Virus record (IMG/VR): IMGVR_UViG_3300023174_000038
Coordinates: 1 to 64,000 of that record
Direction: 5' to 3' (one strand)
Length of the DNA: 64,000 nt
The position numbers and the translations under genes are program-made. Numbering within the stretch: position 1 is the first letter of the stretch; each line of letters starts with the position of its first letter. The notes under the pieces were generated by a model, which did not search any database, had not been told where the DNA came from, and was given only the letters and a program-made list of their open reading frames with translations. Shown in pieces: positions 10,609 through 56,261 of the stretch.

Positions 10609-10654
10609 CCCTATTGTGGGTAAACACATTTTTTTGTATAGGTTTTTAACCCTT

Positions 10655-25808: not shown

Positions 25809-25833
25809 ATTGGTCCTTTGTTATTTAAGTATC

Positions 25834-26030: not shown

Positions 26031-26031
26031 A

Positions 26032-39314: not shown

Positions 39315-39332
39315 GCAAGTATTTATGCCTGC

Positions 39333-39381
39333 CGCACCCCCGTCCAAGACACTTTTCTCTTTGCTTCATACAGCAATAACT
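39333..39381 (-). pseudogene. Truncated relic of a second tmRNA acceptor piece
   Basis: TAAATA (39394-39389), then GCTGTATGAAGCAAAGAGAAAAGTGTCTTGGACGGGGGTGCG breaking off in the presumed T-loop at the HNH promoter. Confidence 0.55.
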
Positions 39382-42300
39382 TCAATTGTATTTAGTATTA
39401 AAATACTCTTTTAACCAAGGCCAATCATAACTTAGTCGTAATTTATCTAACTCACCATTGACTGATTCATAGTATTCTACAGCATGTTGAGCACCTTGTA
39501 TACTATATTGGGCATAGTCTCCTTCACCAACTGTTGTCCATACTTTCAATCTGTGTCTACTAATAGCACTATCATCTAATCGTAACTTAATAGCTTCACG
39601 GAAACTAGTGCGCCATGTACTAAACTCATCTGTATTATATTTTGCTACACCTGAATTAATCTCAACAACTTCATGCTCACTATCCAATGTAAAGTCTAGA
39701 CCTTTACCCATATTACCTAATGTAATCTGTTTATTGTATGCAATCATGGCTTGGTGACCATATACTAATCCATTAACAGGGTTACTTGCATAGAAGATAT
39801 AATGTTTAGGTACTTGTAATCTATCAGGTTGCCATGAGAAATCAAACTTACTATTGACTTTTAACTTAGCAAATACAGTAAACATCCAAGATGTTTGACT
39901 AGCAATTGCGGTTGCATGATAGGCAGCAACACGACCATTGACCCCATCAACTCTAACAACACGATTTTTCAGCCCTTTAGTCACGTTCAGTAAGTGTTCG
40001 TAGTTCTCGTCAGCTATGGCTTCACCGTTACTTAGGAAGACTATATCCAGCGGCTTTGACTGTCCCATCTTTGTTGATTTAGCAATATATGGATAATCAT
40101 ACAATTCTTTCTCAACATGATCGTTAGCTTCTTTGGGTACAACAATACGTGTGCCTCCCATATTCGTAATCAATATATTCTTAGATTCAATAGACCACAT
40201 ACTGATTGGTTCATCATTAATGTCTGGTGCGATTAAATTATCACTTGTAGTAAACACAGCATAAGGGAAGTTATAACTATGTTTTTTGAAATTCAAATGT
40301 GTATCAGCATCAGTAACAAAACTAGGGGCAGGCAAACGTTTTACTTTTTGATGCTGATTAAAGTTAATCTTCTCTATATTTTCTAGCTTATCCAAATCTT
40401 CTACAAGAATACGTAATTTGTTTACATTAATAAAGAATGTATCTCCAAACTTCTGTTTATCACTAGGGAATACATGTAACTGCTCCAATGAGAATGGATC
40501 ACATATATAAGTAAAGTCAAAGTTAGTGTAATCACATATTGAACTGCATACCCAAATGTAATGGTCCTTTTTAATGCCCAACTCATATAGCATATTCTTC
40601 AATGTAGTTAAGTAATCAGTTTCATACTTAATTGTATAAACGTTTTCACGTTTAGTCTTGCTTTCAATTAATGAAACAATATCATTAACTCCGTCATTAC
40701 CATAATCAATTAAGTAAACATCATACAAACAGTTACTAGCAACGGCACGTTTTGTTTTTACAAAGTTTAAGTTACTTAGGTGTTCAATAATTTTCACATA
40801 CTTTGTATCTTCCGCAAAGGTTTCTTTATTGACCATAAACGTACTACCCCAATGACTCCATTGTGTTCCAAACACATGAACCATTGTCATTTGCCACGGG
40901 TTAGGATAATAGTTAAAATCAAAGTTAGTGTAATCTAATTCGCTATTCAGTATCCAGCATAGTTCTGTAGTAGATTTATTGATACAGCGATTGATTGTGT
41001 CTACCCAACTGTGTAGATAACGTGTCTTTTGTAATGTAGGGAATTGTAACTTAAGCTGTTCAAATCTATTAGCTGATTCTTTATTACCTTTATCCACAAA
41101 GAAAGTATCAACTTGTTTGAATAACTTAGATAGATATTCTTCATCTAATTTTGTATTCTCAATAAAACTAATATCTCTATAACCTTTTTGCCACATCTTA
41201 CCGTTAACTAAGTAGGTTTGTGTTAACTCACTGTCAGGACTACCAAACGTATTAATATTAAATGCTTGTTCTTTAGTAGGTTTCCAACTAAAATCAAATT
41301 TAGTATAATTAATATTTTTACGTAATGCCCAAAATATTTCATTGCTATGTTGTTCTATTAATGCATCAAGTGTAGTTTCAATGTAATATTGAGGGTATTG
41401 AATAATACTATCTTCTGATAATAGTATATTTTCTAATAATACTATTTCTCCATCATTACCCGGTGTTATAAATTTAGGACCATCTTGCAAGTGAATATCT
41501 TCTAATATTGTACCAAATTGATAGATATAAGGAGGACTATATGGATCTGGGTGCCAACTAAAATCAAATATAGTTTTATCAAAACCTGCAGGTATGATCC
41601 AATTAGTAAAATTTTGTTTAAGTTTTGCTATAGGATAATCCATATATTTGACCTCAGTTGCGCCATTTGCAATATATCTTGGGCCACCTATCTTATCCCA
41701 TGTGTTAGGGAACTGATAGATATATGCAGGCTCAGTACTATCTGGATGCCAACTATAATCAAATTCTTCTATATTATCAGGTATATCCCAATTAGTTTTA
41801 TTAGGCAAATACTTTGATTTAATGATATCCATGTACTTTATGTTTGTATTTTCTGTACAGCCGGGAGCAGTAAACATAGGTCCATTTGTTTTTTGCCATT
41901 GTGTTCCAAATTGATAGAATAAAGGCTCATCATCTATATTTGGATGCCAGCTAAAATCAAACTCACTAGTATCTAGCCCTGCAGGTATAGACCAATGTGT
42001 CATATCTTGTTTAACTTTTGCTATAGGATAGTCTAAGTATTTTGTTTCTGTAGCACCCTCTACTGTAAATTTAGGTCCACCTGTTTGACTCCACGTACTA
42101 GGGAACTGATAGATATATGCAGGTTCTGTATCATCGGGGTGCCAACTCCAATCAAATGACGTTTGGTCTACATTACGTGGGATCAACCAATTTGTAAATC
42201 TCCATGCTACTACTTCTGCTTTAACAGCATCAATATATTTTAATTCTGTTGCACCAGGAACTATATAGCGAGGTCCCCCTGTCTTTTGATGTATAGTACC

Positions 42301-43524
42301 AAATTGATATATGTAAGGTGGGTCATGTGGATTAGGTTCCCAACTAAAATCAAAACTATTCTTTATAACATAAGGGGGTATTTCCCAATTGTCCGTGCAT
42401 GGTTTACGTGTAGCACGTTCTTCCATGTATTTGTATTCAGTTGCTCCTTCAACAACATATTGTATAGATATTTTATCTTCTGGCTTATTCCATTGATTGC
42501 CCCATGCATAGATATAGGGAGGACTCCACGGGTCAGGAACCCATGAATAATTTATCCCATCACTATTTTCTAAATGTTCAAATCGTGTACTGTTAGGTAA
42601 CAGTTTAGCTTTCATTGATTCATCATCAATAAACTTATATTCTGTTGCTCCTGGTACATGATATTCAACAGTTGGCATAATCTCTGCTGGATATTGCGTA
42701 TTACCAAATACATAAATAAATGCAGGTTCACGCGGATCAGGTCTCCAACTAAAATCAAAATTAAACTTATCTATAGAGTTCCATATTACCCACCTATCCC
42801 ATTCAGGTAATACAGCAACTGAGTTATCCATATACTTTCGGTCAGTAGCTCCTACACAATGATACTCTACTGTGGGTTTTAACTCAGCGGATATATATTT
42901 ATTACCCCAAGTATAGATATATGCGGGTTCACGTGGGTCAGGTCTCCAACTAAAATCAAAACTTGATTTATCTACCGCTTGTATTTCTATCCAGTTATCC
43001 CATTCAGGTATTAATTCTACTACCTCAGGCATGTATTTTACATTAGTTGCATCCTTGACATGATATTCTACATAATGTTTAATTTCAGTTGGATAGAATT
43101 TGCAACCCCATTTATATATGTAGGGCGGGTCATGTGGGTTTGGCTCCCAACTAAAATCAAACTTTAATTCATCAATTTTATCTAGCACCACCCAATTAGC
43201 ATTTTTTAAATTCTTTCTGAGTATAGGCTCAACATCAGCACGATATATAATTATGTCGCTATATCGGTGTGAGCATAGCCAAGTGCCACTATCTTTATTT
43301 TGTTTATTAGGCCATACATTGTTATGTTCACTTGTCCAAACTTCGTCATCGGGTAAAAAGTCAAAGTCCCAATCCCAATCAAAATTTGTATAATCACAAT
43401 ATTCATTGATTATCCAAAAATGGTCGGTGGTACATTGTTGTCTAGCATCGGCTAAATCAATTGCATGTTTTTCTCTGGGGTGGGCGTTGGGTTTACTACC
43501 GTAATAAAATACATCTCTAAGCAT
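39382..43524 (-). CDS. 1380-aa repeat protein with degenerate glycosyltransferase-like modules
   Basis: Nine roughly 67-aa FDFSWxPxPxxPxYIYxFG repeats; C-terminal domain (DIVFLSNGE..RVDGVNG..AYH..NPVNGLVYG..WRTSFRE..K) resembles 50931-51884. Confidence 0.75.
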   Translation of the reverse strand: MLRDVFYYGSKPNAHPREKHAIDLADARQQCTTDHFWIINEYCDYTNFDWDWDFDFLPDDEVWTSEHNNVWPNKQNKDSGTWLCSHRYSDIIIYRADVEPILRKNLKNANWVVLDKIDELKFDFSWEPNPHDPPYIYKWGCKFYPTEIKHYVEYHVKDATNVKYMPEVVELIPEWDNWIEIQAVDKSSFDFSWRPDPREPAYIYTWGNKYISAELKPTVEYHCVGATDRKYMDNSVAVLPEWDRWVIWNSIDKFNFDFSWRPDPREPAFIYVFGNTQYPAEIMPTVEYHVPGATEYKFIDDESMKAKLLPNSTRFEHLENSDGINYSWVPDPWSPPYIYAWGNQWNKPEDKISIQYVVEGATEYKYMEERATRKPCTDNWEIPPYVIKNSFDFSWEPNPHDPPYIYQFGTIHQKTGGPRYIVPGATELKYIDAVKAEVVAWRFTNWLIPRNVDQTSFDWSWHPDDTEPAYIYQFPSTWSQTGGPKFTVEGATETKYLDYPIAKVKQDMTHWSIPAGLDTSEFDFSWHPNIDDEPLFYQFGTQWQKTNGPMFTAPGCTENTNIKYMDIIKSKYLPNKTNWDIPDNIEEFDYSWHPDSTEPAYIYQFPNTWDKIGGPRYIANGATEVKYMDYPIAKLKQNFTNWIIPAGFDKTIFDFSWHPDPYSPPYIYQFGTILEDIHLQDGPKFITPGNDGEIVLLENILLSEDSIIQYPQYYIETTLDALIEQHSNEIFWALRKNINYTKFDFSWKPTKEQAFNINTFGSPDSELTQTYLVNGKMWQKGYRDISFIENTKLDEEYLSKLFKQVDTFFVDKGNKESANRFEQLKLQFPTLQKTRYLHSWVDTINRCINKSTTELCWILNSELDYTNFDFNYYPNPWQMTMVHVFGTQWSHWGSTFMVNKETFAEDTKYVKIIEHLSNLNFVKTKRAVASNCLYDVYLIDYGNDGVNDIVSLIESKTKRENVYTIKYETDYLTTLKNMLYELGIKKDHYIWVCSSICDYTNFDFTYICDPFSLEQLHVFPSDKQKFGDTFFINVNKLRILVEDLDKLENIEKINFNQHQKVKRLPAPSFVTDADTHLNFKKHSYNFPYAVFTTSDNLIAPDINDEPISMWSIESKNILITNMGGTRIVVPKEANDHVEKELYDYPYIAKSTKMGQSKPLDIVFLSNGEAIADENYEHLLNVTKGLKNRVVRVDGVNGRVAAYHATAIASQTSWMFTVFAKLKVNSKFDFSWQPDRLQVPKHYIFYASNPVNGLVYGHQAMIAYNKQITLGNMGKGLDFTLDSEHEVVEINSGVAKYNTDEFSTWRTSFREAIKLRLDDSAISRHRLKVWTTVGEGDYAQYSIQGAQHAVEYYESVNGELDKLRLSYDWPWLKEYFNTKYN

Positions 43525-43542
43525 TATATTACTTAGCTGGAT

Positions 43543-45096
43543 TTATTTGTTATAATTATTTAATATATCAGATAGCCATGGTATATAATTTTCTAATTTA
43601 TGACCTCTAATGTCATCTAACCTACGGGTATCGTCAGCTAGCTTTGGTAACAGATGGCTATTATCTTTAGCAAACATATAGTTGATTAAACCACTATAGC
43701 TATGCCTAAATATATTACCCATTTCTAGTCCATATTTTTCATCTATTTCTTTGTAAAAAAATTCATATGCTTCTCGTATTTGATTTTTTACATTAACGGG
43801 TAGTACTTGTATACTCATGGGAGACGGGCCCTCTAGTACGTGATAGCTAGGCGTTTTTCTAATTCTTTTATAATTTTTTTCTATTAACCATTTAGAAATT
43901 TCTAAAAAATGATATACATTGAATATACTTATAGTAGTAGATATTGTACCATAAATAGATTTAGTTGGATTATTACCTAACACATCTAAATTTTGTTCTA
44001 GTGCATCCCAAGTACTTGGATATCTTAGATAGTATGCCAAATCCTCAATTGCATCTATACTGCATCCTATTCCTACGGATCTGAACTCTTCCCATAAGTT
44101 ATATAGCTTATTTGGTATAGCAAACATATTTGAATTGTAATCCAAATGAACACGATTGCTATGACCCATATCTATAATTTTTTGTAATAATTTAAAATGT
44201 ATTTTATTAATTGTAGGTTCGCCGCCGGTAAAATAATATCGGTCAATATAGGGAATTAGTTTTTCAATTTGATTCCAGAATTCATCCGATTCATACCATT
44301 CAAAATCCGAAGAATCAATGGTATAATTATTATTTTTTTTGATTACATTATACGTTTTTCCCCCATAAAAAGACATAGGAGCTGAGGAAGGCTTTTCTCC
44401 CTCGTATGACATGAAAACAAAATCGTCATACCACAGACTGCTATCGGTCGGGCCGCAATATCTACATTTTAAATTGCATAAATTTCCAAAACGAATATCA
44501 ATATATTTTATTGGAAACTTTTCTATATCTATACTTCCATCATTAGCAGTGTTATCAATGAATCCTGTATGTCCGTATGTATTAATACTGTGTAATCTTT
44601 TACTAGATAAACCGGTGTCTTCTTCTTTCCAACATAAATTACATGACGGATGTTTTTCTCCGCGCAACATACTTGCACGTAATTCTTTAAATACTGTGTT
44701 ATTTCGTGATTGATTTATATCAGTATTTTTAACGTTTAACATTTCTCCGTTCTCTATTAGTTTACCGTACGGGTAGTATATCTGTTGACAACAAATTCTT
44801 AAATCTCCATTTTGTTGTATGCCAGTAGAGACCCATGGTATTGGGCAAAACGTTGAATTTTTTGGAAGGTCCTGCATTTGAGGATTTATTTGATTCAGTC
44901 TTGTTTTTGCTAGCTCAATTGAAGCTTCTGAGCAATGAGGATTTTTCATACCTGCTACTATAACTTCTGATTCAACATCATGTGTTATCATAGCTGTTAT
45001 TAATTCAGGAAAATCTGTAATTGTAATAAGTTCAACTCGTTCATTAGAATCAAAACAGTTGTGAAGTTTATTAAACCAATATTCACTGGTATTCAT
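43543..45096 (-). CDS. Radical SAM protein with an N-terminal Twitch/SPASM-like domain
   Basis: FCPIPW..GDLRICC..SCNLCW; CNLKCRYC; FTGGEP. Confidence 0.88.
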   Translation of the reverse strand: MNTSEYWFNKLHNCFDSNERVELITITDFPELITAMITHDVESEVIVAGMKNPHCSEASIELAKTRLNQINPQMQDLPKNSTFCPIPWVSTGIQQNGDLRICCQQIYYPYGKLIENGEMLNVKNTDINQSRNNTVFKELRASMLRGEKHPSCNLCWKEEDTGLSSKRLHSINTYGHTGFIDNTANDGSIDIEKFPIKYIDIRFGNLCNLKCRYCGPTDSSLWYDDFVFMSYEGEKPSSAPMSFYGGKTYNVIKKNNNYTIDSSDFEWYESDEFWNQIEKLIPYIDRYYFTGGEPTINKIHFKLLQKIIDMGHSNRVHLDYNSNMFAIPNKLYNLWEEFRSVGIGCSIDAIEDLAYYLRYPSTWDALEQNLDVLGNNPTKSIYGTISTTISIFNVYHFLEISKWLIEKNYKRIRKTPSYHVLEGPSPMSIQVLPVNVKNQIREAYEFFYKEIDEKYGLEMGNIFRHSYSGLINYMFAKDNSHLLPKLADDTRRLDDIRGHKLENYIPWLSDILNNYNK

Positions 45097-46403
45097 AGCC
45101 GTTCTCCTGTATGATGTTGTAACTCAGGAAAGGTTTTTTTGAAATCAGTATTTCTTTCTTTATCTAGTTTAATCAAATAACCCATATACCAGTTAACATC
45201 AAAGTCAACAGTTTCTTCTAATGCATTTTTAATTATACTTAACCTGTTATCAAATACATTTTTACAATCTTCCTGTAATTTTTGTGAAGATTTTAATGGT
45301 AATAATGTATTGTAATACCATTGCTCATACTCGGAAATTTTAATACGTAAATGTTCTTTCCATTCTTTACTAGCGGACCTTATTGAAAAGTACTCAGGAT
45401 ATAGTAAAACAATATTATGATAATCAGATTCCCAAATACTAGTGTTGTAAAACGTATGCGGGAAGAGGTCATTTACTAAAAAATATTCTAGTATATCTTT
45501 TATCCGATGTATATTCATCAGACTCCAGGTTGGAGTAATTACCCAATGACGATTACTTCCTGTTAAATTATCTTTTAATAGTTTAATATTTTTCAATATT
45601 TTATTTGCATCAGCTGGATAGCGTATGTAAAATAATCTATCCACATCAACTTCATCTAAACTTACTAATACACGTAATTTTTCCATGTGTTTCCAGTAAT
45701 CTAAAACGTCTGTTGATTTATAAGTCATTGTGGTTAAGTTAGTACTGTACACAAATTCTATTTCTCCTAATCTGTTTGATTCTTTAATATATTCTAGTAT
45801 TTCATAATGTTCAGGATGAAGTAAAGGTTCTCCACCAGCAAAATATATTTCTTCAACATTGTTTACTTGCGATTTTATAGTTTCAATGAAGCTTTCTTTA
45901 TGATTTTTACTGTTATTAAATTGATCCTCAGTATAATTAGGATCAATTGCCTTCATAATAGGTACCCATGAACTACTATACGTAGGATGGCACACTGTAC
46001 ATGCTAGATTACATAAATTGTTAAATCTGAAATCCCATTTCAAAAATTTCATACTACTCATTGTTCCATCTATAGCAGTATTATCTTCAATCAGTTCTTC
46101 ATAAAAATCTTTAAACCTATCATTAAAGCTTCGGCGTATTGTTGACGTACTTCCCCATTCTTCTTCTTTGTAGCATCTTGTACAATGTTTTGATTTTGTA
46201 TCGTTTAATATATCTCGTCTTAATTCTTTATAATTTTCATTGTTCCAAATATCTTGTATATTTTCTTTATACAAATTCCCCATACTGCCACCTAAACTGA
46301 TACAGCAGGGAAGTATATCTCCTGTTGGAACATTATGTATATGCATAAACGGAGCCATGCAAAATACTTTGCTTTCTTTAATGTGAAATGTTTTTTTAGT
46401 CAT
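45093..46403 (-). CDS. Radical SAM protein with an N-terminal Twitch/SPASM-like domain
   Basis: FCMAPF..GDILPCC..HCTRCY; CNLACTVC; FAGGEP; start MTKKTF at 46403 (track 46523). Confidence 0.88.
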   Translation of the reverse strand: MTKKTFHIKESKVFCMAPFMHIHNVPTGDILPCCISLGGSMGNLYKENIQDIWNNENYKELRRDILNDTKSKHCTRCYKEEEWGSTSTIRRSFNDRFKDFYEELIEDNTAIDGTMSSMKFLKWDFRFNNLCNLACTVCHPTYSSSWVPIMKAIDPNYTEDQFNNSKNHKESFIETIKSQVNNVEEIYFAGGEPLLHPEHYEILEYIKESNRLGEIEFVYSTNLTTMTYKSTDVLDYWKHMEKLRVLVSLDEVDVDRLFYIRYPADANKILKNIKLLKDNLTGSNRHWVITPTWSLMNIHRIKDILEYFLVNDLFPHTFYNTSIWESDYHNIVLLYPEYFSIRSASKEWKEHLRIKISEYEQWYYNTLLPLKSSQKLQEDCKNVFDNRLSIIKNALEETVDFDVNWYMGYLIKLDKERNTDFKKTFPELQHHTGERL

Positions 46404-48720
46404 TTGAAATTTTAAAAACTTTTTTTGATTTATTTCTATACTGTTCGTGTACCGTTTCTTTTGTTTGAATTTCAGATGATATCCAATCTTTAATATTACC
46501 TGTTTCTTCAAAAACACCATCAAAACTATAATTAACCTTTTCTCTTTCCAATCGGTATGTTTCTTTTAAGTGCGGAGTTACTGTATCATGTACAAATTTA
46601 TGTGTCAACTTTATATTATAGTTGCCATTAGAGTCTATCTCAAACGTTAGATCAGAGTCGTACATTCTAGAAATATAATCACCAAACGTATTAAAGTCAG
46701 TTTCTGCATTGCACTTAAATGTAAATTTAAAAGCTCCAAAGTACGTGTGTATAACATATAGCAAAGCAAAATATTCGTTAGTTATACTAGCAAAAAACGT
46801 GTTATCTGTGTTTCTATTCAAGTTAACATATTGGTCATATGTTATATAGTCTGTTACATTTTTAGTACCAGTAAAAGTATAAAAATCTTGTATATTGTGA
46901 TATCGTTGAGCATTAATCATAGCAGAATCAGAATAATAATTGATTATATCTAACCACACATGGTTTAATTTTATTCTTAAAAATCTATGCATAGCAGTAT
47001 TATTATCAGTATGCCATGAGTTAAATAAATTGTTATCGTAGGGTTTCTCAATCCAATTCATTCCATAATCTTTCCAATTAGTATCCCAGTGTGCAATACT
47101 TTGGGGCGGTGATGCTCCAAAGCCTGGACTTATATTATCAATCCAATTTCTACAATTGAATAGTAATTGAAAACTATGTAAGCAGTCGATTGGTTCTTCT
47201 GTGGGGAATCCTACCATCCAATTTATGTGAACAAACATCCCCGACGCTTTAGAATCTTTAAGATTATTTTCTACTTCCCATATGTCAATCTTCTTACGCA
47301 TATCATTAAGAACTTTTTGACTTCCTGATTCTACCCCATAGCTCAGACATGTGCATCCACTATCTGTAACCTTTTGTAAGAATTCAGCAGTCATTCTTCC
47401 ATCACATCTTGCGTAAGAGTTCCAATGTATTTTAATATTTCTTTCTAATATTAGATCAACCAGTTTTTGGAAATTTTTTAAATTTCCATTAACTAAACTA
47501 TCAACAAACCAAAATCTACTAACACCTAAATTATTTTGTTGGTATTCTATTTCATCTACTACTCTTTCCGGAGTCATTGATCTAAATTTCCAGAAATGTG
47601 TTTCAGCGCAAAAACTACAGTCTGCTACACACCCTCTAGACGTTTCAATGCTAACCCCGTAGCTGTGTTCGTAGTTGCTAAAATTGTAATCAGAATAGTC
47701 CGGATACGGGTATACGTCTAAATCTAATTTACTATTTACCGTCCCTATAGTTTGACTGCTACCAATATCGGTATCATCAGTTAACTCTTCCAAAAATTTT
47801 ACAAAATTTTCTTCAGCCTCTCCTATAAATTTGTAATTTATAAGAGTTGTTAATAAATGTCCGTTGCTAATAGCACCGGGACCTCCTACCACGATACATA
47901 CATCGGGCATCATATATCTTAATTCCCGTATTAGATATAGACTAGCATGGATGTTTGTATCATATAAACTAAATCCAACGACCTTGGGATTAGATTGAAG
48001 AATATTAAATAATGTTCTATCAAATACGTCCTTCAAGTCGGGCAATATAAATTCACTAAAACTTTCCGAGCTATTCCAATAAAAATATCTATTTGATGCC
48101 CAGTAGTCAATTCCGGTGGTATCATGAAGATGATGGAAAGATTCTATATTAAGATCGTACACTCTAACACTATAATCTAAATGTCTCAATAATCCTGTTA
48201 GTTTGGCGAGGTTGTAAGGTGGAAATAGTTTTCCCCAAGCTGGCGCTACTACAAGTCCAATTCTAAATTTAGAAGTGTCTGCCCATTCAACTTCTTTATG
48301 GATATATCCGGAATCTACGGTAGGTTGTTCATCTCCTAAATGTGATATTGCATGACTTAGATTTGAATCTTTTTTAAGTATATGATTTAGGATAATTTGA
48401 TCCCGATCACCGACAACCATCTTTGTTGCCTCTTCCTCTTGTTTTGCAATATCATCCGACATTAGTGTTATTCTTTGTCGTCTGTCTCTTTCACTCCAAA
48501 ATCTAGGATTATCAATTTCGGGAAATCTTAATATTGCAATTTCAATAAATGCTTTATCAATTTTAGAACTAACCGCGGCAGCCTCTACGACAGACGCCAT
48601 TGTGTCCCATTTGATCATATTTTCTAATATATAAGTTGGGCATCCTCGTGTGGATGCAACATTAATTCTTTCTAAATGATCCGCATCTTTTAGTCTTTCT
48701 TCAAAGTTTATTTTTTTCAT
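46396..48720 (-). CDS. B12-binding (class B-like) radical SAM protein
   Basis: PPYNLAKL, VVGFS, VVGGP, GEAE (cobalamin domain); ETSRGCVADCSFC; YGVESGS; MVGFPTE. Confidence 0.88.
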   Translation of the reverse strand: MKKINFEERLKDADHLERINVASTRGCPTYILENMIKWDTMASVVEAAAVSSKIDKAFIEIAILRFPEIDNPRFWSERDRRQRITLMSDDIAKQEEEATKMVVGDRDQIILNHILKKDSNLSHAISHLGDEQPTVDSGYIHKEVEWADTSKFRIGLVVAPAWGKLFPPYNLAKLTGLLRHLDYSVRVYDLNIESFHHLHDTTGIDYWASNRYFYWNSSESFSEFILPDLKDVFDRTLFNILQSNPKVVGFSLYDTNIHASLYLIRELRYMMPDVCIVVGGPGAISNGHLLTTLINYKFIGEAEENFVKFLEELTDDTDIGSSQTIGTVNSKLDLDVYPYPDYSDYNFSNYEHSYGVSIETSRGCVADCSFCAETHFWKFRSMTPERVVDEIEYQQNNLGVSRFWFVDSLVNGNLKNFQKLVDLILERNIKIHWNSYARCDGRMTAEFLQKVTDSGCTCLSYGVESGSQKVLNDMRKKIDIWEVENNLKDSKASGMFVHINWMVGFPTEEPIDCLHSFQLLFNCRNWIDNISPGFGASPPQSIAHWDTNWKDYGMNWIEKPYDNNLFNSWHTDNNTAMHRFLRIKLNHVWLDIINYYSDSAMINAQRYHNIQDFYTFTGTKNVTDYITYDQYVNLNRNTDNTFFASITNEYFALLYVIHTYFGAFKFTFKCNAETDFNTFGDYISRMYDSDLTFEIDSNGNYNIKLTHKFVHDTVTPHLKETYRLEREKVNYSFDGVFEETGNIKDWISSEIQTKETVHEQYRNKSKKVFKISND

Positions 48721-49973
48721 TATGTTTGATTTTTAAATAATTCAAGTTGTTGCTCAGTATACTGAACTACTTCTCCTGGATTTTGCATCCCTCGTATTGG
48801 AACAAGACTTACAACACCTTTAACTCTTCCATTTGCACCCGGTCTGTTTAATAAATCTAAATTTAATATTTTCTCTTTTAATTTTAATGCTCTATCTATA
48901 TATTTAGGAGGAGCCATTAATTTTACTTCTAACCAATGGTCATCGTCATGTTCATCAAAATGTTCGCATATTACTTTAATATTTTTAACAAATCTATCTT
49001 CATCATTGTATTCTGTTAAGCCGTCAAAATGAGCACTTAATAATATGCTATTCATATATTTTGCTAGTTCCCCCCAGTATTTATGATCTCTGGTTCCATT
49101 ACTAGTTACCATAGTCCATTGGTTTTTACCTTTAAGATACTTAATAAAATCTAAAAAGTTAGGATGTAACGTAGGCTCACCGCCGCCAAAGTTCCATCTG
49201 ATGGTTTTATTATGGGCCCATTCTTCAATAATCTTATCAGCAGTGCTTATCAATAAGTCATAATCTTTATGGGTATCAGTTTTATTATGCACTCCTGGCC
49301 AGCAATAGGAACAATCATAATTACATTTTCTGCTAAGATCCCATAAAATTTGATAGGGCATAGAATAATTCAATTCAACTGCAACTGGATCACTTATATT
49401 ATCAACATAATCATTTTCAGTACGGTCTCGCCCTTGCCATCCTTCATTGTTAACAGCAAGCGTTGTCCTATGCATTTTAGTTTTGACTTTGCTTAATACA
49501 ACATCAGCACCGCAGCTACATGAATTCCACGGACATACAAACCACTCTTTAGACAAAGAAAAACTTTCATTTATATTGCCCAAAAACCCAGGTATATTAT
49601 TTTTATTTTCTTCTGTTACTGGGATTATTTTTTTATATGCCTTGCCATTCTTTTTAAATTCTGATTCTAATTTTAAAAATTCTTCGCCTGTATGCCACCA
49701 CTCAGATGGAATATTTTTTCCAAATTTATCAATCTTAGAGAATAACAATTCTTTCCAATTGTCATGATTAAAACGGTCTATGAATGAACTAGCTGTATTA
49801 CATACCCAAATGTTGCCGTCAAAGTCAATATATAAATTTTGAACTCCGGCGCTACATTTCCAATTTTGCCAATAATTATATCTGTTTGCAATTGCTTCGT
49901 CAACCGAAACTCTTATAAATTTTCCATCATCATCATATATTCTTAATTGCTTGTTGTTGTTAATATTATCCAT
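48720..49973 (-). CDS. Radical SAM protein with the SPASM-like domain placed N-terminally
   Basis: N-terminal WKCSAG..IDFDGNIWVC..CPWNSCSCGAD; CNYDCSYC; GGGEPT. Confidence 0.85.
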   Translation of the reverse strand: MDNINNNKQLRIYDDDGKFIRVSVDEAIANRYNYWQNWKCSAGVQNLYIDFDGNIWVCNTASSFIDRFNHDNWKELLFSKIDKFGKNIPSEWWHTGEEFLKLESEFKKNGKAYKKIIPVTEENKNNIPGFLGNINESFSLSKEWFVCPWNSCSCGADVVLSKVKTKMHRTTLAVNNEGWQGRDRTENDYVDNISDPVAVELNYSMPYQILWDLSRKCNYDCSYCWPGVHNKTDTHKDYDLLISTADKIIEEWAHNKTIRWNFGGGEPTLHPNFLDFIKYLKGKNQWTMVTSNGTRDHKYWGELAKYMNSILLSAHFDGLTEYNDEDRFVKNIKVICEHFDEHDDDHWLEVKLMAPPKYIDRALKLKEKILNLDLLNRPGANGRVKGVVSLVPIRGMQNPGEVVQYTEQQLELFKNQT

Positions 49974-49977
49974 TATG

Positions 49978-50937
49978 TTACTTTATATCTAATTCTTTGG
50001 TGCTCATTATGTCAAAATTACAATGACACATAGTTTTATTACATAATACAGGTGTTTTTGGTACTTCAAAGGCTTCAAATATATTACCAATCTTTCCACC
50101 TACTCTACACCAACCACGATATATGTCGCCACCTAAGTCTACAATAATCTGCTCTGCACCGGCATAACAATTCCACCCACTCCAATCATTAGTCTTTTGA
50201 CTGATAAATCTATGTGCGCTAGAAACAACTTCTGTATTATCTTCTTTAATCATCTTCATGGCACCACGATAGTAATCAAATGATTTGGTATACTTAATGT
50301 GTTTAACAATCAACTCATGTTGTTTATCAAATATCTTCTTTTGAAACTCATCATAATCATACAATGTATCACCAAAATCATGTATCAACGGCTGTAATGC
50401 CATACTGATATTGCCTATACCCTTAACTTTATTAGCTACAGCATAGCAAAAATCAAACTTATCTGGACTCATCATAATGTTTACATGTGTACGTACATCA
50501 TCATGCAACAACTTTACTACTTCTACAAAGTGGTCAGCTTCTGCAAACTCAGGGTGAAAGCTTAAACATACATGGTCAAAGTATTGTTTATTATCTTCCC
50601 ACCAACGTAATGTTCTACTGCCGTTACTAATCAATCCTACTTTAGCACCTAATTCGGTGCAATGTTTACATATCTCTACAAAATGTTTGTATAGTGTTAC
50701 TTCACCACCGGTTAGTTCAAAGTAAACTTTACGCGGAGCAACTTGTTCTACTACACGTGTGATAAATTCTTTAACTTTATCTAGTTCAGGCCATTTAATA
50801 TCACCTGAATGAAGATTCTCTGGACAATAACTACATTCAAAGTTACAAGTATTACCCATACACCAATTGACTACAAACCATTCTTCATGTACAGGGTTAC
50901 TGTGTACTAACTTAATATAATTGTGTTCCATTACCAT
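49978..50937 (-). CDS. Radical SAM/SPASM protein
   Basis: CNFECSYC, TGGEVT, SNGSR; C-terminal WNCYAG..GWC..CNKTMCHC. Confidence 0.88.
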   Translation of the reverse strand: MVMEHNYIKLVHSNPVHEEWFVVNWCMGNTCNFECSYCPENLHSGDIKWPELDKVKEFITRVVEQVAPRKVYFELTGGEVTLYKHFVEICKHCTELGAKVGLISNGSRTLRWWEDNKQYFDHVCLSFHPEFAEADHFVEVVKLLHDDVRTHVNIMMSPDKFDFCYAVANKVKGIGNISMALQPLIHDFGDTLYDYDEFQKKIFDKQHELIVKHIKYTKSFDYYRGAMKMIKEDNTEVVSSAHRFISQKTNDWSGWNCYAGAEQIIVDLGGDIYRGWCRVGGKIGNIFEAFEVPKTPVLCNKTMCHCNFDIMSTKELDIK

Positions 50938-51884
50938 CCTTCTATTTTTCTAATAACATCCATCTCTTTAACTAACGGTCCGAGATTATATTTATCAGAG
51001 CTATAGTGACGCTTGAAGAACTTGCTTTGTCCCCCGTCAAAGTGATGCATTGGCAAATCAAGTTTATCAGTTAATGCCGCACCTAATAATGCTGATTCAC
51101 GATCAGGATCTCTATGTAAATGTTCTTCCCATAATACAGTATAGTTATCAAACCATTGTACATTAGCAGGATCCCACTCAGTAAGCATAGTCATATATGT
51201 TCCAAGGCGGGCTCCATAGATAGCCCACTCACCGTTCTCTATATCACGACCGATGTTGTGCCAAATAGTTAAATTGTTTAAGTTACGACTAGCAACAGTT
51301 TCTTTTAGTGCATCAACTGTAGGTTTTGATCCACGGTCAAGAACCATTTTTACTCCTTCACGGAATCCAGCTCGCCACGCTTGAAACGGAGTATAATTAG
51401 GATAAGTAGTAGAGTAGCAGTCATACATTGTCCAATATAAGTTGTCTTTGCTGTCTAAACAAAAGTCAGCAATTCGTGAAACATCACCTTCAGTTTGATG
51501 CTCGTGTGTTTTCATTTCACGCACATAAGTTTTTGTCCAACTACTCATTCCACCATTGCCATAGCGTAGTCCATTGATGTTATTAATGGCTTTCCAACGA
51601 TATTGTGCTATCTTGTAGTTAGGATCTTTGTCAGTGAAGTCTAATTGTAGGTTGAAGAAACTTTCATCTGGCATGTTGTCACCGTCAATCAAAATGAAAC
51701 GTTCTGTGTCGCTTGCTTCACCTGCGGCTTTATGTGCGGCATCAGATCCCTTAACACTATCAACACGTTTGGCCCAAGGCACCATGTTTTTAATTTTGAG
51801 CCAAAATTCTTCTTTTTGTGGTTCATCATAACTGAGATAGATGCAGTCTAAGTCTGCTACATCAATAATATCATCAGAGTTCAT
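50931..51884 (-). CDS. Glycosyltransferase-like (GT-A) protein
   Basis: IYLSYDEP, RVDSVKGSDAAHK, FILIDGDN (DxD), AWRAGFREGVKM. Confidence 0.6.
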   Translation of the reverse strand: MNSDDIIDVADLDCIYLSYDEPQKEEFWLKIKNMVPWAKRVDSVKGSDAAHKAAGEASDTERFILIDGDNMPDESFFNLQLDFTDKDPNYKIAQYRWKAINNINGLRYGNGGMSSWTKTYVREMKTHEHQTEGDVSRIADFCLDSKDNLYWTMYDCYSTTYPNYTPFQAWRAGFREGVKMVLDRGSKPTVDALKETVASRNLNNLTIWHNIGRDIENGEWAIYGARLGTYMTMLTEWDPANVQWFDNYTVLWEEHLHRDPDRESALLGAALTDKLDLPMHHFDGGQSKFFKRHYSSDKYNLGPLVKEMDVIRKIEGW

Positions 51885-52203
51885 ATGTTTTTAATTTCCA
51901 TTTAGTTATATTATTGTAAGAGCTATCTACAACGATGCTCAAATCTTCATTAGCACAACTTGTACCTTCATCATCATGTATTAACTTAGATACAACGGAA
52001 CCGGCTATAGCGCCTGCTACTTTACCATCTACTACTCTAAGATCAGGACGACCTTGAGCATAGGTACTTGAGTCTATTACAACATAATTACCTTCTGGTT
52101 TTTCACATGTATAAAATAATACATTACCACGTTCATCATAATACAATCTGAACTCAGGCTTAATGATGGGAGGTGCTTCCCAAATTACAAATTCTTCCAT
52201 CAA
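51874..52203 (-). CDS. Hypothetical protein
   Basis: 109-aa coupled ORF. Confidence 0.7.
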   Translation of the reverse strand: MMEEFVIWEAPPIIKPEFRLYYDERGNVLFYTCEKPEGNYVVIDSSTYAQGRPDLRVVDGKVAGAIAGSVVSKLIHDDEGTSCANEDLSIVVDSSYNNITKWKLKTYEL

Positions 52204-52946
52204 TAACTTTCTAATATTTTATCACTAAACGATTTAATGTGATAGTGAAACGGGTAAAGTTGTGGGTAAGTATTTACTCTAATCATTTTAGGTAATACTT
52301 CGTATACTAACGTGTTAGTCCAATCTTCACTGGGTATACCATTAACATATTGTTTCATATGAATCATACTCATTTCATTAAAATCAGGCAATGTAGTTTT
52401 TTCTACACCTACTATATGACATGCTATAGCATATACCCAATCAGTTGATACTTCTTCGTTTGGGTTACATTTTAATATGGCTTTATATTCTTCCCAATTT
52501 TCAAAAATATCTCTTACTACTGTATAAAACAGCTTAGCCGTTTCTGACTTTTTAAAGTATGTTATGCTATTATAAGTATCTGGTAGCATATTCTCATCAA
52601 TAAACTTTCTATATACTCTGCAATCAGATAGTTCACCTTTAAAATTTCTAATAGTAGTGGATACTACTACATCATTTATACTTAGTATATCCCACCAATG
52701 TTCTATGCTTCGGGGGATAATCATATCTGCTTCTAGTTTGATGGTTTCATCGTACGGGCTTGCTTCATATACTTGCCAATCATTTGTATAACCACCCGTA
52801 TCACCATGTGGCAACATGTCACTGGTGATAATAGTTACATTAGCATTGGGCATAACTTTTTTAATGCTTAACTCTAATGCTTTTGCACAATTAGTATAAC
52901 TAACTTTCTCAGTATCTTGTGCCATAATTACAAAACCTCTAGTCAT
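52200..52946 (-). CDS. GT8-like glycosyltransferase
   Basis: A..L..SIK, SPYDETIKLEADM; paralog of 52943-53746. Confidence 0.65.
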   Translation of the reverse strand: MTRGFVIMAQDTEKVSYTNCAKALELSIKKVMPNANVTIITSDMLPHGDTGGYTNDWQVYEASPYDETIKLEADMIIPRSIEHWWDILSINDVVVSTTIRNFKGELSDCRVYRKFIDENMLPDTYNSITYFKKSETAKLFYTVVRDIFENWEEYKAILKCNPNEEVSTDWVYAIACHIVGVEKTTLPDFNEMSMIHMKQYVNGIPSEDWTNTLVYEVLPKMIRVNTYPQLYPFHYHIKSFSDKILESY

Positions 52947-53746
52947 GCTATTAGCTCCATAAAGTTTTCTTTATTCATAACATGAAAATCCATATTTTTA
53001 ATTGTTATATACTCTTTTCGTATTTTACCACGTTGCCAGTTGTCATACATAACAGTATATTCTGTGTTAAACACACTATCATTATCTCTATATATTGATG
53101 TGTTTTTACCAACATGTACTAAATTCCAGGGTATAATATCACGAGGACTATCACTATGCCCATTTGCTATACGTAAGGCAAGTGTTAGTGCGTAATCATT
53201 ACGATATACTCCACCAACAAAGCTATGTATATCACAGTAGTGGTCATAGTTATTTTGTACCATTTCTAAACATTCAAATATTTGTTTAGCACGATTGGAT
53301 TTTTTAAATGTAACAACGGTAGCCCACAAAGTTTTAAAACTATATGAACTTAATACTTCCTGTGCTACTCCTGGTTGCATTAAGTAACTAGTAGTATCAT
53401 GGCAACAGAAGTCATCATATATATTAAAAATTCTTAATAATTTATCTGAGTTAACCATATAATCTGTGTCTAGCAGAATCGTTTCATCATACGGGCTAAA
53501 GTCATATGCTTGATAACGTCCCTTGTTAATCCAAATATTATGTTCACGTATGTTGTTTTTATCAGCAGTGGTAACTATAACTTTGTCAAAGGTATATGAT
53601 TCTGTTGTTGGTAATGATTCTTCATCTGTAACTAATGTAACTGGAAGATTTAAGAAATGGTTAATGCGTTTAGCAGTGGCTACTGCCATGTCATAGTAAT
53701 TAAACTTGGGAGAGTTAAACGCAAATAATATTGCACCTTTGCTCAT
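52943..53746 (-). CDS. GT8-like glycosyltransferase
   Basis: TLVTD, FDKVI, SPYDETILLDTD (DxD), YRND, FHVMNK. Confidence 0.7.
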   Translation of the reverse strand: MSKGAILFAFNSPKFNYYDMAVATAKRINHFLNLPVTLVTDEESLPTTESYTFDKVIVTTADKNNIREHNIWINKGRYQAYDFSPYDETILLDTDYMVNSDKLLRIFNIYDDFCCHDTTSYLMQPGVAQEVLSSYSFKTLWATVVTFKKSNRAKQIFECLEMVQNNYDHYCDIHSFVGGVYRNDYALTLALRIANGHSDSPRDIIPWNLVHVGKNTSIYRDNDSVFNTEYTVMYDNWQRGKIRKEYITIKNMDFHVMNKENFMELIA

Positions 53747-54048
53747 CGTACAATCTCAATCTCTTTCCATTCTTTATACCAGTCAAGCATAACTTTACTA
53801 TATGTTTCTTTTAATACGTTTAGCAATTGTGCGCGGTTGACCTGTACAGGGTTATTAAAGTTATCAATTAATACAACAAAATTATCATCTAATGCATTTA
53901 AAAATGCAATAAGTTCAGGACTAGCTTTCCATAGTCCACCTTGTTCGGCAATAATAAATTTGCCATCGTATTTGTCTTTTAGTTGCGCTTTTGCGCTATT
54001 GTGATTGAAGCGGGCTTTAGCCTCGCTAATTAAGGTTTTGGTATCCAT
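53743..54048 (-). CDS. Hypothetical protein
   Basis: 101 aa, SD AGGAG, TAAATA upstream. Confidence 0.7.
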   Translation of the reverse strand: MDTKTLISEAKARFNHNSAKAQLKDKYDGKFIIAEQGGLWKASPELIAFLNALDDNFVVLIDNFNNPVQVNRAQLLNVLKETYSKVMLDWYKEWKEIEIVR

Positions 54049-54094
54049 TAAACACTCCTAAAAGTATTTAGATAGATACTGTGCTGTTGAAAAA

Positions 54095-55045
54095 TTAACT
54101 ACCTGTTACAGTACCAGTAATACTAGGTGTTCCCCACGTGTTGGCAATATATGTAACTTCGGGTGGGCGTATAGTTACTGTAGTAGCTGAACCGGTTGCT
54201 ACAGTAAGACCATTTGGGATTTCATCCCAAACTGTGTATATAGTAACAATACTACCTACGTCACCATTACTACCTTGAGTACCATTTGTTTTAACAAAGA
54301 TATTAATGTTAGTTGATAAGTAACCAGAAGGGCCTGTACTAGCAGTTTGATAGAATACATTAGCATTAGCAGTTGACCAATTATAATATCCACTATTAGT
54401 TGATATAGTAGGGCTAGATCCTCCGCCACCTACTCTAGTTACTCCGTTATAGCTTGTACCAGCAATACTTGCAGCACCCGAAGTAGGTGAGCTTAGAACC
54501 ACAGTACCCACATTGCTTGCTAAGTTATTTAATAGCAAATTAATTCCTGAACCAGCAGGATGCGAACATGTAATTGCTAATTGTCCACCTGAGTTAAAGA
54601 AATAACGTGCGGCATCACCGTTAGCAAACGATACAGTATGAGTAAATGTGATTGCGTTAAGCCATGTTGCACCATAAGTTGCGGTATTTGCACTTGTTCC
54701 GCTTTGCGATACAGCATTTAATCTATTTGTGTAAATTGTTTGTAAATTAGTAACAACATTAGCATTATATGTAATTGTATTTCCAGAGGCCGGGGCTGTT
54801 ACACTAGTAATACTTGAACTTTGATGACTAGCTGAGTTGGATGTTCTATTAATTAAATTAGCCCAACTAGTAGCAGTAACTGTGTCACCCGTAGCTACAT
54901 TTGCTAACGCTGTTTGACCATAACCTGCACCACCACTACCTGTAGCCCATACTGTGTTTAATACATTAGCTGTGCTGCCTGCGGCTGCACCCACTAAATT
55001 ATTATAATCACTAGCTTGAATTGTTCCGTATTGTGCGTAGCTCAT
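54095..55045 (-). CDS. Virion structural (tail-associated) protein
   Basis: G/S/T/N-rich; GYGQ and ARYFFNSGG motifs; tail gene context. Confidence 0.7.
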   Translation of the reverse strand: MSYAQYGTIQASDYNNLVGAAAGSTANVLNTVWATGSGGAGYGQTALANVATGDTVTATSWANLINRTSNSASHQSSSITSVTAPASGNTITYNANVVTNLQTIYTNRLNAVSQSGTSANTATYGATWLNAITFTHTVSFANGDAARYFFNSGGQLAITCSHPAGSGINLLLNNLASNVGTVVLSSPTSGAASIAGTSYNGVTRVGGGGSSPTISTNSGYYNWSTANANVFYQTASTGPSGYLSTNINIFVKTNGTQGSNGDVGSIVTIYTVWDEIPNGLTVATGSATTVTIRPPEVTYIANTWGTPSITGTVTGS

Positions 55046-55048
55046 CTT

Positions 55049-56230: not shown

Positions 56231-56261
56231 ATTAAATTACCCCGATATTCTGTTATTTATC

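Follow-up and report, generated by a model that had tools for sequence, protein, structure and literature searches.

We found that a freshwater jumbo phage carries, just after its fibre-like genes, three conserved glycosyltransferase-like proteins followed by an exchangeable block of five radical SAM enzymes, a set that we tentatively read as decorating a phage protein with an unusual tailored glycan. The arrangement recurs in hundreds of uncultured phages and has not been studied. The stretch analysed here (the window) is the first 64 kb of IMG/VR phage record IMGVR_UViG_3300023174_000038, which is 348,701 bp long. An earlier note, based on the sequence alone, had described a locus of two GT8-like proteins, one GT-A-like protein, four SPASM/twitch radical SAM enzymes, one B12-dependent radical SAM enzyme, and a giant repeat/GT-like protein directly downstream of the tail genes. 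Our analysis confirmed this observation, and the gene inventory was correct. The genes given with coordinates below lie on the minus strand.

Gene content of the locus

Eleven open reading frames fill window positions 39382–54048. Most have overlapping stop and start codons, the largest internal gap is 18 nt, and a 46-nt gap at 54049–54094 separates them from the upstream gene. The sequence TAAATA, behind which the note had placed the locus, is present at 54065–54070, but the octamer around it was no commoner in the window than in shuffles (5 found against 6.3 expected), so promoter status is unsupported.

The first gene after the gap, p101 (53743–54048), encodes a conserved 101-aa protein with no Pfam, NCBIfam, or PHROG hit and a homolog at the same position in 79 related loci. 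GT267 (52943–53746) is a retaining-type GT-A glycosyltransferase-like protein with a predicted GT8/GT6-like fold. Its AlphaFold model had a pLDDT of 93.7, and Foldseek returned 361 PDB hits at E ≤ 1e-3 led by GT8/GT6 enzymes, with GlyE, glycogenin, alpha-1,3-GalT, and GTA/GTB at the top (E about 1e-6, probability 1.0). Its DxD motif is D93-T-D95, and D95 was invariant in 46 family members. GT248 (52200–52946) is a paralog of GT267 with E-A-D at the DxD position. It aligned with the GT267 family with the second Asp invariant, gave reciprocal cross-hits in genes 352 and 353 of the cultured Ralstonia phage RsoM2USA, and was present in 81 loci. The small conserved protein p109 (51874–52203; 109 aa), whose start overlaps the preceding stop, had no family hit but had homologs in 67 loci. 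GT317 (50931–51884) is a GT2-like GT-A enzyme by predicted fold (residues 1–165) with a helical C-terminal domain. Its model had a pLDDT of 92.1, VIA-align gave Z scores of 8–9.6 to GT-A enzymes, and the top Foldseek hits were PBCV-1 A64R and the SunS/ThuS peptide glycosyltransferases. D67 and D69 of its DxD motif (D67-G-D69) were nearly invariant in a family of 1106 clusters at 50% identity. No Pfam glycosyltransferase family was hit by any of these proteins, and the assignments rest on predicted folds.

All five radical SAM enzymes passed Pfam PF04055, and the genome holds only one further radical SAM gene, at 182.8 kb. rS319 (49978–50937) has a C-terminal Cys-rich (twitch-like) domain, a PF04055 score of 44.5 bits, and CX3CX2C at residue 31, but fell below the cut-off for every NCBIfam equivalog. 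rS417 (48720–49973; 50.5 bits, CX3CX2C at residue 217) carries the same Cys-rich domain N-terminally, with its residues 15–162 aligning to rS319 residues 232–316. Neither had a Pfam SPASM hit, so the SPASM/twitch label given to these two in the note rests on motif and homology. B12rS (46396–48720) is a 774-aa cobalamin-dependent (class B type) enzyme by domain content, with PF02310 at 35.6 bits, PF04055 at 62.8 bits, and extra N- and C-terminal regions. Its best NCBIfam match was the RiPP C-methyltransferase subfamily TIGR03975, at 118 bits against a cut-off of 281.85, and it was absent from most relatives. NTw476 and NTw517 are N-terminal-twitch enzymes of NF033640 (N_Twi_rSAM), scoring 307.6 and 348.7 bits, respectively, against a cut-off of 170. 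The NTw476 reading frame runs to 46523 from a TTG (476 aa), but the ATG at 46403 is the likelier start (45093–46403; 436 aa). Its Pfam SPASM hit at residues 55–118 precedes the Radical_SAM hit at 168–332. NTw517 (43543–45096) has an extra N-terminal stretch of about 78 aa that is lacking from its homolog in the related locus L006.

The last gene, G1380 (39382–43524), encodes a 1380-aa protein with about nine 66-aa repeats (FDFSWxPDP...YIYxFG), three modules of about 125 aa, and a C-terminal domain homologous to GT317 (hhalign probability 99.2) in which the DxD is replaced by F-A-K. It was only 63–73% identical to its counterpart in the related locus L005, while neighbouring genes were 92–98% identical. 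The G1380 family has at least 1772 clusters of 1248–2415 aa with 6–27 motif copies, and F-A-K was conserved where it could be scored. G1380 had no Pfam or PDB sequence hit. Beyond it, an HNH endonuclease gene (38682–39347; PF01844 at 22 bits) is a likely mobile insertion and not part of the pathway, as it was absent from L005, a 91%-identical relative in which about 110 bp replace about 850 bp.

Upstream, p316, fib393, and p206 (54095–56882) are virion- or fibre-like on moderate evidence and are the candidate acceptors and the fixed left neighbours of the module. fib393 had an N-terminal PHROG 'virion structural protein' hit and a C-terminal Peptidase_G2 intramolecular-chaperone hit slightly below threshold (23.5 bits against a cut-off of 25). 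The N-terminal half of p316 resembles a PA5oct 'virion structural protein', and p206 is conserved in 93 jumbo-phage records, some annotated as structural. Elsewhere in the window we found a DegT-type aminotransferase (19065–20141; PF01041 at 142 bits) and an NDP-sugar 4,6-dehydratase/epimerase (20080–21057; PF01370 at 143 bits), a possible sugar supply. The genome encodes no nucleotidyltransferase. A canonical GT2 glycosyltransferase (33243–33965; PF00535 at 78.5 bits, with weak PHROG 'GtrB-like' and 'glycosyltransferase' hits) lies 5 kb beyond the locus and its link to it is uncertain. The window also carries a porin gene.

A fixed core and a variable cassette

Comparison of core and variable gene content, a check the note had named, showed the order fibre-like genes, small protein, GT, GT, small protein, GT to be fixed in 80 related IMG/VR contigs and in RsoM2USA. 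The synteny also held in L175, a 40%-identity relative. What follows GT317 is a hypervariable cassette of 1–8 radical SAM paralogs plus sugar-nucleotide and other enzymes, which differed even between phages about 85% identical in the core. In 52 of 76 loci the next gene after GT317 was a radical SAM gene, usually within 10 nt of its stop, and 77 of 80 loci held at least one radical SAM gene within 10 kb. Nucleotide homology broke off exactly at gene ends, at 50927 and at 49990. The latter lies at the 3' end of rS319, the last gene conserved with some relatives, where homology to loci L010, L013, and L068 stopped.

Cassettes in relatives contained a dehydratase/epimerase in 17 loci (homologs of the dehydratase at 20080–21057), a carbamoyltransferase in 10, a nucleotidyltransferase-kinase, and a cupin read by eye only. 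A 368-aa family in 50 loci had GT10 as its nearest named relative, which is only a lead. Relatives also carried fatty-acid desaturase or hydroxylase and LpxO-type Asp/Asn hydroxylase genes there, which would fit host lipid or envelope remodelling, and the variable region may be a general accessory-gene hot spot.

Bacterial homologs of GT317 are fused to GT-B domains and sit beside double-glycine-leader peptides, HlyD, and C39-ABC exporters. One such locus, L174, also has two NF033640 enzymes (310 and 314 bits), and locus L138 pairs an NF033640 enzyme with a GT2. N_Twi_rSAM contexts nonetheless differ between bacteria: Paenibacillus pairs the enzyme with ACP, ketosynthase, and reductase genes, some neighbours are GT2 and ABC ATPase genes, and most are uninformative. 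The phage loci had no double-glycine-leader peptide and no exporter, and small ORFs in the cassettes look spurious.

Proposed function and alternatives

The note had proposed a dedicated pathway in which five radical enzymes in a row build and tailor (oxidise, methylate, crosslink) a glycan or protein modification on S/T/N-rich tail proteins. This interpretation was partly supported. A dedicated, conserved, glycan-related module directly after fibre-like genes is borne out, and a polypeptide acceptor gains indirect support from the bacterial peptide clusters and from the absence of membrane segments in all locus proteins. The five radical SAM enzymes are not a fixed pathway, however, as only the three-GT core is conserved, and modification of the tail proteins remains an inference.

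We propose a two-part, phage-encoded, cytoplasmic glycosylation and tailoring module. The fixed part (p101, GT267, GT248, p109, and GT317) and the exchangeable part are established by comparison, while the acceptor, the radical SAM reactions, whether these act on sugar or peptide, and the order of steps are inferred. In this view, host nucleotide sugars, possibly with an amino-deoxy sugar made by the phage's own dehydratase and aminotransferase, would be used by GT317 to start a glycan on a polypeptide, and the two GT8-like enzymes would extend it. The radical SAM enzymes would then change unactivated carbons by hydrogen abstraction, with epimerisation, oxidation, or dehydration by the twitch enzymes and C-methylation by the B12 enzyme, giving each phage lineage its own glycan chemistry. 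The most likely acceptor would be a virion protein encoded immediately upstream (p316 or fib393). G1380 may be a non-catalytic binding or scaffold partner, or itself a substrate. We put the probability of a glycan-building and tailoring module at about 0.75, but that of the full proposal, including a phage polypeptide acceptor, at only about 0.45. Structural matches to protein and peptide glycosyltransferases (A64R, SunS/ThuS, GlyE, glycogenin, and the Skp1 GalT) favour it, but there is no direct evidence for any acceptor, a complex prediction for GT317 with p316 returned no answer, and p316-like proteins exist in PA5oct-type phages that lack the module. The presence of the module in RsoM2USA makes the proposal testable.

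Among the alternatives, remodelling of host lipid-linked O-antigen, capsule, or LPS intermediates, which could block superinfection or stop progeny sticking to debris without modifying the virion, is unlikely but fits the hydroxylase, desaturase, carbamoyltransferase, and sugar-nucleotide genes in relatives' cassettes, the nearby GtrB-like GT2, the porin gene, which shows investment in the host envelope, and the GT2 and ABC ATPase neighbours of some bacterial N_Twi_rSAM genes. The locus, though, has no membrane protein, flippase, polymerase, or initiating transferase, whereas known seroconversion systems use membrane Gtr proteins, and the strict linkage to the fibre genes, the translational coupling across the loci, and the peptide clusters around bacterial GT317 homologs also speak against it. 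We consider RiPP-like maturation equally unlikely, in which the radical SAM enzymes would act directly on a phage polypeptide through epimerisation, C-methylation, or crosslinks, as in proteusins or sactipeptides, and the GTs would add only a minor decoration. The NF033640 enzymes in double-glycine-leader clusters, the sub-threshold TIGR03975 match, and SkfB among the PDB sequence matches suggest it. Conversely, the family also occurs with ACP and ketosynthase genes, the sugar-modifying enzymes BtrN and BlsE matched equally well, sugar-nucleotide enzymes accompany the radical SAM arrays, and no recognisable leader or recognition element was found in the locus profile searches or among the cassette ORFs.

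A free small-molecule glycoside, such as an aminoglycoside-like compound, made during infection is very unlikely. The enzyme set (twitch and B12 radical SAM enzymes, carbamoyltransferase, aminotransferase, dehydratase, and GTs) resembles aminoglycoside pathways such as those using BtrN, GenK, and TobZ, but no cyclitol synthase, exporter, or resistance gene was seen in the locus or cassettes, and the conserved part is the GT trio next to the fibre genes and not a scaffold-forming enzyme. DNA hypermodification, an alternative in the note, found no support and is the least likely reading. Phages do glycosylate DNA and use radical SAM enzymes in thymidine hypermodification, and all locus proteins are predicted to be cytoplasmic, but the locus has no DNA-binding, kinase, or hydroxymethylase domain, the phage thymidylate synthase keeps the canonical PFNIASY dUMP motif, GT317 relatives sit in peptide clusters, and the module is tied to fibre genes and not to nucleotide-metabolism genes.

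Comparison with described systems

Virus-encoded virion glycosylation is among the closest described processes, and the A64R GT domain is the top Foldseek match of GT317. In mycobacteriophage capsid/tail glycosylation and Chlorovirus PBCV-1 A64R capsid glycosylation, soluble GT-A enzymes are encoded next to structural genes and act in the cytoplasm, and mycobacteriophage genome reports read paired GT genes as capsid glycosylation (PMC11256854). No radical SAM enzymes are known in those systems, and the module described here, for which virion glycosylation is only inferred, has a fixed three-GT core plus a hypervariable radical SAM cassette and a giant repeat protein. Glycocin-type RiPP systems (PMC12457901, PMC6405829) share the SunS/ThuS structural match and, through the bacterial branch of the GT317 family, double-glycine-leader peptides and C39-ABC exporters, once together with NF033640 enzymes. 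The phage locus has no leader peptide, protease, or exporter, GT317 is not fused to a GT-B domain, and the acceptor would be a large structural protein.

Serine-rich-repeat adhesin glycosylation, in which GT8 enzymes such as GlyE extend O-glycans on S/T-rich proteins, resembles our locus in that GlyE is the top structural match of GT267 and the candidate acceptors are S/T/N/G-rich surface proteins. This similarity is at fold level only, with 13–16% sequence identity, and there is no GtfA/GtfB-type GT-B initiating pair. In proteusin (polytheonamide) maturation, a radical SAM epimerase and B12 C-methyltransferases act on one ribosomal product, as several radical SAM enzymes including a B12-dependent one would here, but the phage locus has no nitrile-hydratase-like leader. 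Compared with sugar-tailoring radical SAM enzymes of aminoglycoside and nucleoside pathways (BtrN twitch dehydrogenase, BlsE, and B12-dependent C-methyltransferases such as GenK), the N-terminal part of the N_Twi family profile aligned to the C-terminal twitch domain of BtrN (E 1e-8) and the core to BlsE, a B12-dependent enzyme is present, and sugar-nucleotide enzymes co-occur. No equivalog cut-off was reached, the twitch domain is N-terminal rather than C-terminal, and in phages the enzymes occur as tandem arrays of up to 8 diverged paralogs.

Gene content and predicted enzymes

The window, at the start of a 348,701-bp phage record rated complete, is about 35% G+C and essentially all of its genes are on the minus strand. 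From 54048 down to 39382 there are eleven ORFs, preceded by a 46-nt gap, most of them with overlapping stop and start codons and with a largest internal gap of 18 nt. In transcription order these are the small protein p101 (53743-54048), the glycosyltransferase (GT)-like proteins GT267 (52943-53746) and GT248 (52200-52946), the small protein p109 (51874-52203), the GT-like protein GT317 (50931-51884), the radical SAM proteins rS319 (49978-50937) and rS417 (48720-49973), a 774-aa B12-dependent radical SAM enzyme (46396-48720), the radical SAM proteins NTw476 (45093-46403, although the ORF runs to 46523 from a TTG) and NTw517 (43543-45096), and the 1380-aa repeat protein G1380 (39382-43524). None of the locus proteins has a membrane-like segment. 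The earlier note's observation of a packed radical SAM and glycosyltransferase locus at these positions is confirmed. An HNH endonuclease gene follows at 38682-39347. It is absent from the 91%-identical relative L005, where about 110 bp replace about 850 bp, and looks like a recent homing-endonuclease insertion. A promoter role for TAAATA ahead of the locus was not supported, since the octamer was not enriched, and sigma-70-like and terminator-like counts equaled those of shuffled sequence. Megablast of the locus against GenBank phages found nothing.

All five radical SAM proteins passed Pfam PF04055 and carried CX3CX2C. NTw517 and NTw476 are clear members of the N-terminal-twitch family NF033640 (N_Twi_rSAM), scoring 348.7 bits over model positions 2-397 of 398 and 307.6 bits over positions 1-396 against a curated cut-off of 170 bits. 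Their SPASM-type domain lies N-terminal to the core, with CX3CX2C at residues 207 and 171, and C84, C103, C152 and C155 were conserved across 25 paralogs. In a profile of these 25 paralogs, the N-terminal part aligned to the C-terminal twitch domain of BtrN at E 1e-8, while the core matched viperin, BlsE, SkfB and MoaA. The 774-aa protein has a B12-binding domain (PF02310, 35.6 bits against a cut-off of 32.1, residues 239-308) N-terminal to a radical SAM core (PF04055, 62.8 bits, residues 358-512) with the Cys motif at residue 364, as in class B (cobalamin-dependent) radical SAM methyltransferases. However, it belongs to no characterized equivalog such as the RiPP C-methyltransferase, PhpK or BchE: its best match was the RiPP C-methyltransferase subfamily TIGR03975 at 118 bits against a cut-off of 281.85, and all others were also below their cut-offs. 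The N-terminal extensions of this enzyme (residues 14-74) and of NTw517 (residues 16-74) were weakly similar, with 30% identity over 61 aa at E 0.015 in a six-sequence set, which is a lead only. They could share a docking or recognition domain, though the NTw517 ortholog in the related contig L006 lacks the extension.

rS319 and rS417 belong to no named family. rS417 scored only 38.8 bits to NF033640 and rS319 had no reported hit, so neither is a member, and neither had a PF13186 or TIGR04085 hit. Both carry a shared Cys-rich accessory domain of the C...G...C...CxC type, C-terminal in rS319 and N-terminal in rS417, a natural domain permutation between adjacent paralogs within one operon (48720-50937). 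The genome has just one other radical SAM gene, with an open frame of 491 aa, at 182.8 kb (182788-183291 of the full record), far from the locus. A second NAD-dependent epimerase/dehydratase lies at 265130-265762, also far from the locus.

Pfam, NCBIfam and PHROG scans gave nothing useful for the three GT-like proteins, p101, p109 and G1380, but the GT-like proteins are predicted to fold confidently. The GT267 model (pLDDT 93.7) matched retaining GT-A enzymes of the GT8/GT6 type, with 361 Foldseek hits at E<=1e-3 led by GlyE, glycogenin, alpha-1,3-GalT and GTA/GTB (TM 0.40-0.50, probability 1.0) and also including the Skp1 GalT. GT248 is its paralog. GT267 has D93-T-D95 at the metal-binding DxD motif and GT248 has E-A-D, and the second Asp is invariant in both across an alignment of 46 sequences that left out those of Ralstonia phage RsoM2USA. 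Membership of the GT8 family was not supported by sequence profile, since no Pfam family was hit at E<=0.01 and a profile of the GT267/GT248 family found no PDB sequence. The GT317 model (pLDDT 92.1) has a GT-A domain in residues 1-165, with VIA-align Z of 8-9.6 over residues 6-165, followed by a helical C-terminal domain. Its top Foldseek matches were the PBCV-1 capsid-glycosylating A64R and the peptide glycosyltransferases SunS and ThuS, its AFDB-cluster matches beyond its own family were GT2-like, and D67 and D69 are nearly invariant. There was no hit to PF00535 or any other Pfam family, and a profile search of the PDB gave only a marginal match to GmaR at E 0.19.

G1380 consists of about nine 66-aa repeats, three modules of about 125 aa, and a C-terminal domain homologous to GT317 (hhalign probability 99.2) in which DxD is replaced by F-A-K. 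Its family has at least 1772 clusters, with lengths of 1248 to 2415 aa and 6-27 motif copies, and F-A-K was kept in the members that could be scored. A PDB profile search with the repeat unit found nothing.

A conserved core and a hypervariable cassette

In all 80 related IMG/VR loci that were retrieved (55-96% identity) the order is giant protein, p206, fib393, p316, p101, GT267, GT248, p109, GT317, where p206, fib393 and p316 are the fibre-like genes. The GT genes are thus adjacent to and co-oriented with these upstream genes. The same order holds for L175, a 40%-identity relative in which six tandem radical SAM genes follow. The only cultured carrier found was Ralstonia phage RsoM2USA, which has the equivalent order: its genes 355 to 348 read fibre-like, small protein, GT267-like, GT248-like, small protein, GT317-like, N_Twi_rSAM (316 bits), then a second GT317-like gene. 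Downstream of GT317 the content varies. There were 290 N_Twi_rSAM genes in 75 loci, 1-8 per locus, falling into at least eight subfamilies at 45% identity, and in 52 of 76 loci a radical SAM gene was the immediate neighbor of GT317, usually within 10 nt. The module has a sharp boundary between its conserved and hypervariable parts. Nucleotide homology to the window stopped exactly at the end of rS319 (49990, in relatives L010, L013 and L068) or at the end of GT317 (50927, in relative L011). Only one close relative (L005/L008, about 91% nucleotide identity) shared the full cassette, and there G1380 was 63-73% identical while its neighbors were 92-98% identical. The five radical SAM enzymes are therefore one allele of a hypervariable cassette, and not a fixed pathway; the earlier note had taken five such enzymes in a row to suggest a dedicated pathway.

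Besides radical SAM genes, cassettes in relatives held NDP-sugar dehydratase/epimerase (17 loci), carbamoyltransferase (10 loci), a nucleotidyltransferase-kinase, an FkbM methyltransferase, a cupin recognized by eye, and a 368-aa family in 50 loci whose nearest named relatives are GT10 fucosyltransferases, which is a lead only. The window itself has a DegT aminotransferase and a 4,6-dehydratase/epimerase at 19-21 kb, and a canonical GT2 at 33.2-34.0 kb. It has no nucleotidyltransferase, so we infer that host nucleotide sugars must be the input. In more distant relatives the position after the GT317-like gene holds oxygen-dependent enzymes, namely TauD, Asp/Asn hydroxylase, and fatty-acid desaturase or hydroxylase. 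In L177 (10001-19186) these stand in place of radical SAM genes, and in L006 (12049-16446) they lie beyond three radical SAM genes. Two readings fit: C-H functionalizing enzymes may be interchangeable here, or the region may be a general accessory hot spot whose genes do not all serve one pathway.

Candidate acceptors and competing interpretations

The evidence that the upstream genes encode virion proteins is moderate. fib393 has a PHROG 'virion structural protein' N-terminus and a near-threshold intramolecular-chaperone C-terminus, the N-terminal half of p316 resembles a PA5oct virion protein, and p206 is shared with 93 Rak2/Atu_ph07-type jumbo phages. In RsoM2USA the neighboring genes are the tail sheath, baseplate wedge and mass-spectrometry-confirmed structural proteins (PMC8504454). 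The earlier note's placement of the locus downstream of tail genes is therefore reasonable on this evidence.

The strongest clue to the acceptor comes from bacteria, where the GT317 domain forms the C-terminal half of GT-B fusions of about 730-810 aa. These lie next to peptides with classic double-glycine leaders, HlyD-type proteins and C39-peptidase ABC exporters (bacterial loci L169/L170, L173 and L174). L174 (75-12993 of a Logan contig from SRR22411500) is an apparently undescribed peptide cluster with five such peptides, whose cores are G/P/S/T/C-rich and end in GYG plus one residue, together with two fusions, two NF033640 enzymes at 310 and 314 bits, HlyD and a C39-ABC exporter. A Cellvibrionaceae chromosome (L138) has HlyD, a C39-ABC exporter, a double-glycine-leader peptide, an NF033640 enzyme at 366 bits and a GT2. 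Both signature families of the phage module therefore occur together in ribosomal peptide clusters elsewhere. The all-soluble proteins and the fixed position after fibre-like genes point the same way, and a phage polypeptide, most simply p316 or fib393, is the favored acceptor. Several points count against certainty. No double-glycine-leader precursor or C39 exporter was present in the window or in the 80 phage loci, and a search of the phage cassettes for hidden precursor peptides gave only out-of-frame-looking ORFs. Most bacterial loci lacked double-glycine-leader peptides under a strict pattern, and a Pfam tally of the neighbors of bacterial N_Twi_rSAM genes was too mixed to assign a function. 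In the Paenibacillus isolates L121 and L141 (about 6200-12500) an NF033640 enzyme (372 bits in L121) is embedded between an acyl carrier protein, a short-chain reductase and two ketosynthase-like genes, so the family is not restricted to peptide or glycan contexts. PA5oct-type phages have p316-like proteins without the module, and a complex prediction of GT317 with p316 returned no answer and is not evidence either way.

The earlier note's interpretation, a pathway that builds and tailors a glycan or protein modification on the tail proteins, is thus supported only in part. We describe the module as a conserved phage glycosyltransferase trio, tied to fibre genes, with a hypervariable radical SAM tailoring cassette. 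The glycan-module reading is well supported, whereas the acceptor, the attachment of a glycan to virion proteins, and the SAM cleavage, substrates and reactions of the radical SAM enzymes are inferred.

Host-envelope remodeling is the main rival, supported by the lipid- and LPS-type oxygenases in relatives and by the nearby GtrB-like GT2. Direct radical modification of the polypeptide, a free glycoside and DNA modification are less likely. For DNA, the thymidylate synthase keeps the canonical dUMP motif, and nothing in the locus is DNA-related. A more far-reaching possibility, unlikely on present evidence but not excluded, is that tail-fibre proteins of a large, globally distributed clade of jumbo phages are matured like RiPPs. 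In this view the fixed glycosyltransferase trio would act on the virion surface together with a rapidly exchanged array of up to eight N-terminal-twitch radical SAM enzymes, installing lineage-specific glycans and radical-derived changes (epimerized, methylated or crosslinked residues). The cassette would then work as a diversity generator for the chemistry of the receptor-binding or exposed surface, rather than its sequence.

Virus-encoded protein glycosylation is known from only a few systems, and radical SAM chemistry is not known to have been linked to virion modification. Literature searches on radical SAM enzymes with jumbo phages and on twitch with polysaccharide found nothing relevant, and we found no description of the module in the searchable literature. 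If confirmed, it could show how jumbo phages vary their surface chemistry, which bears on adsorption, stability and resistance to host proteases or defense recognition. It would also give function to NF033640, a large uncharacterized radical SAM family, and to two orphan phage GT families, and would point to a new class of glycosylated, radical-SAM-modified bacterial peptides, as in L174. A cultured carrier, RsoM2USA (genes 348-355), makes the question directly testable.

Distribution and host-related genes

The pairing is common in nature. GT317 relatives numbered at least 8000 candidates at 90% identity, forming 1106 clusters at 50% identity, nearly all viral, and at least 584 IMG/VR contigs encode the family. 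The phage occurs in lake metagenomes from several studies. A scan of bacteria with a seven-member radical SAM alignment recovered marine MAG contigs labeled Rickettsiales, Verrucomicrobia and Betaproteobacteria. Four of these (L106, L109, L110 and L135) carry homologs of the phage fibre genes plus GT267, GT248, GT317 and N_Twi_rSAM, while L116 has the GT and radical SAM homologs but gave no fibre-gene hit. They are probably jumbo-phage contigs mis-binned into bacterial genomes, and they also show that the module occurs in marine phages.

Elsewhere in the window, the phage encodes a Gram-negative porin (27986-28891; PF13609, 82.6 bits) and an eight-helix sodium:dicarboxylate symporter (30257-31534; PF00375, 224 bits), unusual host-envelope and transport accessory genes that point to a Gram-negative host. 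At 24522-27132 a MoxR-type AAA ATPase sits next to a DUF2201 metallopeptidase/VWA protein, a pair of unknown role in a phage.
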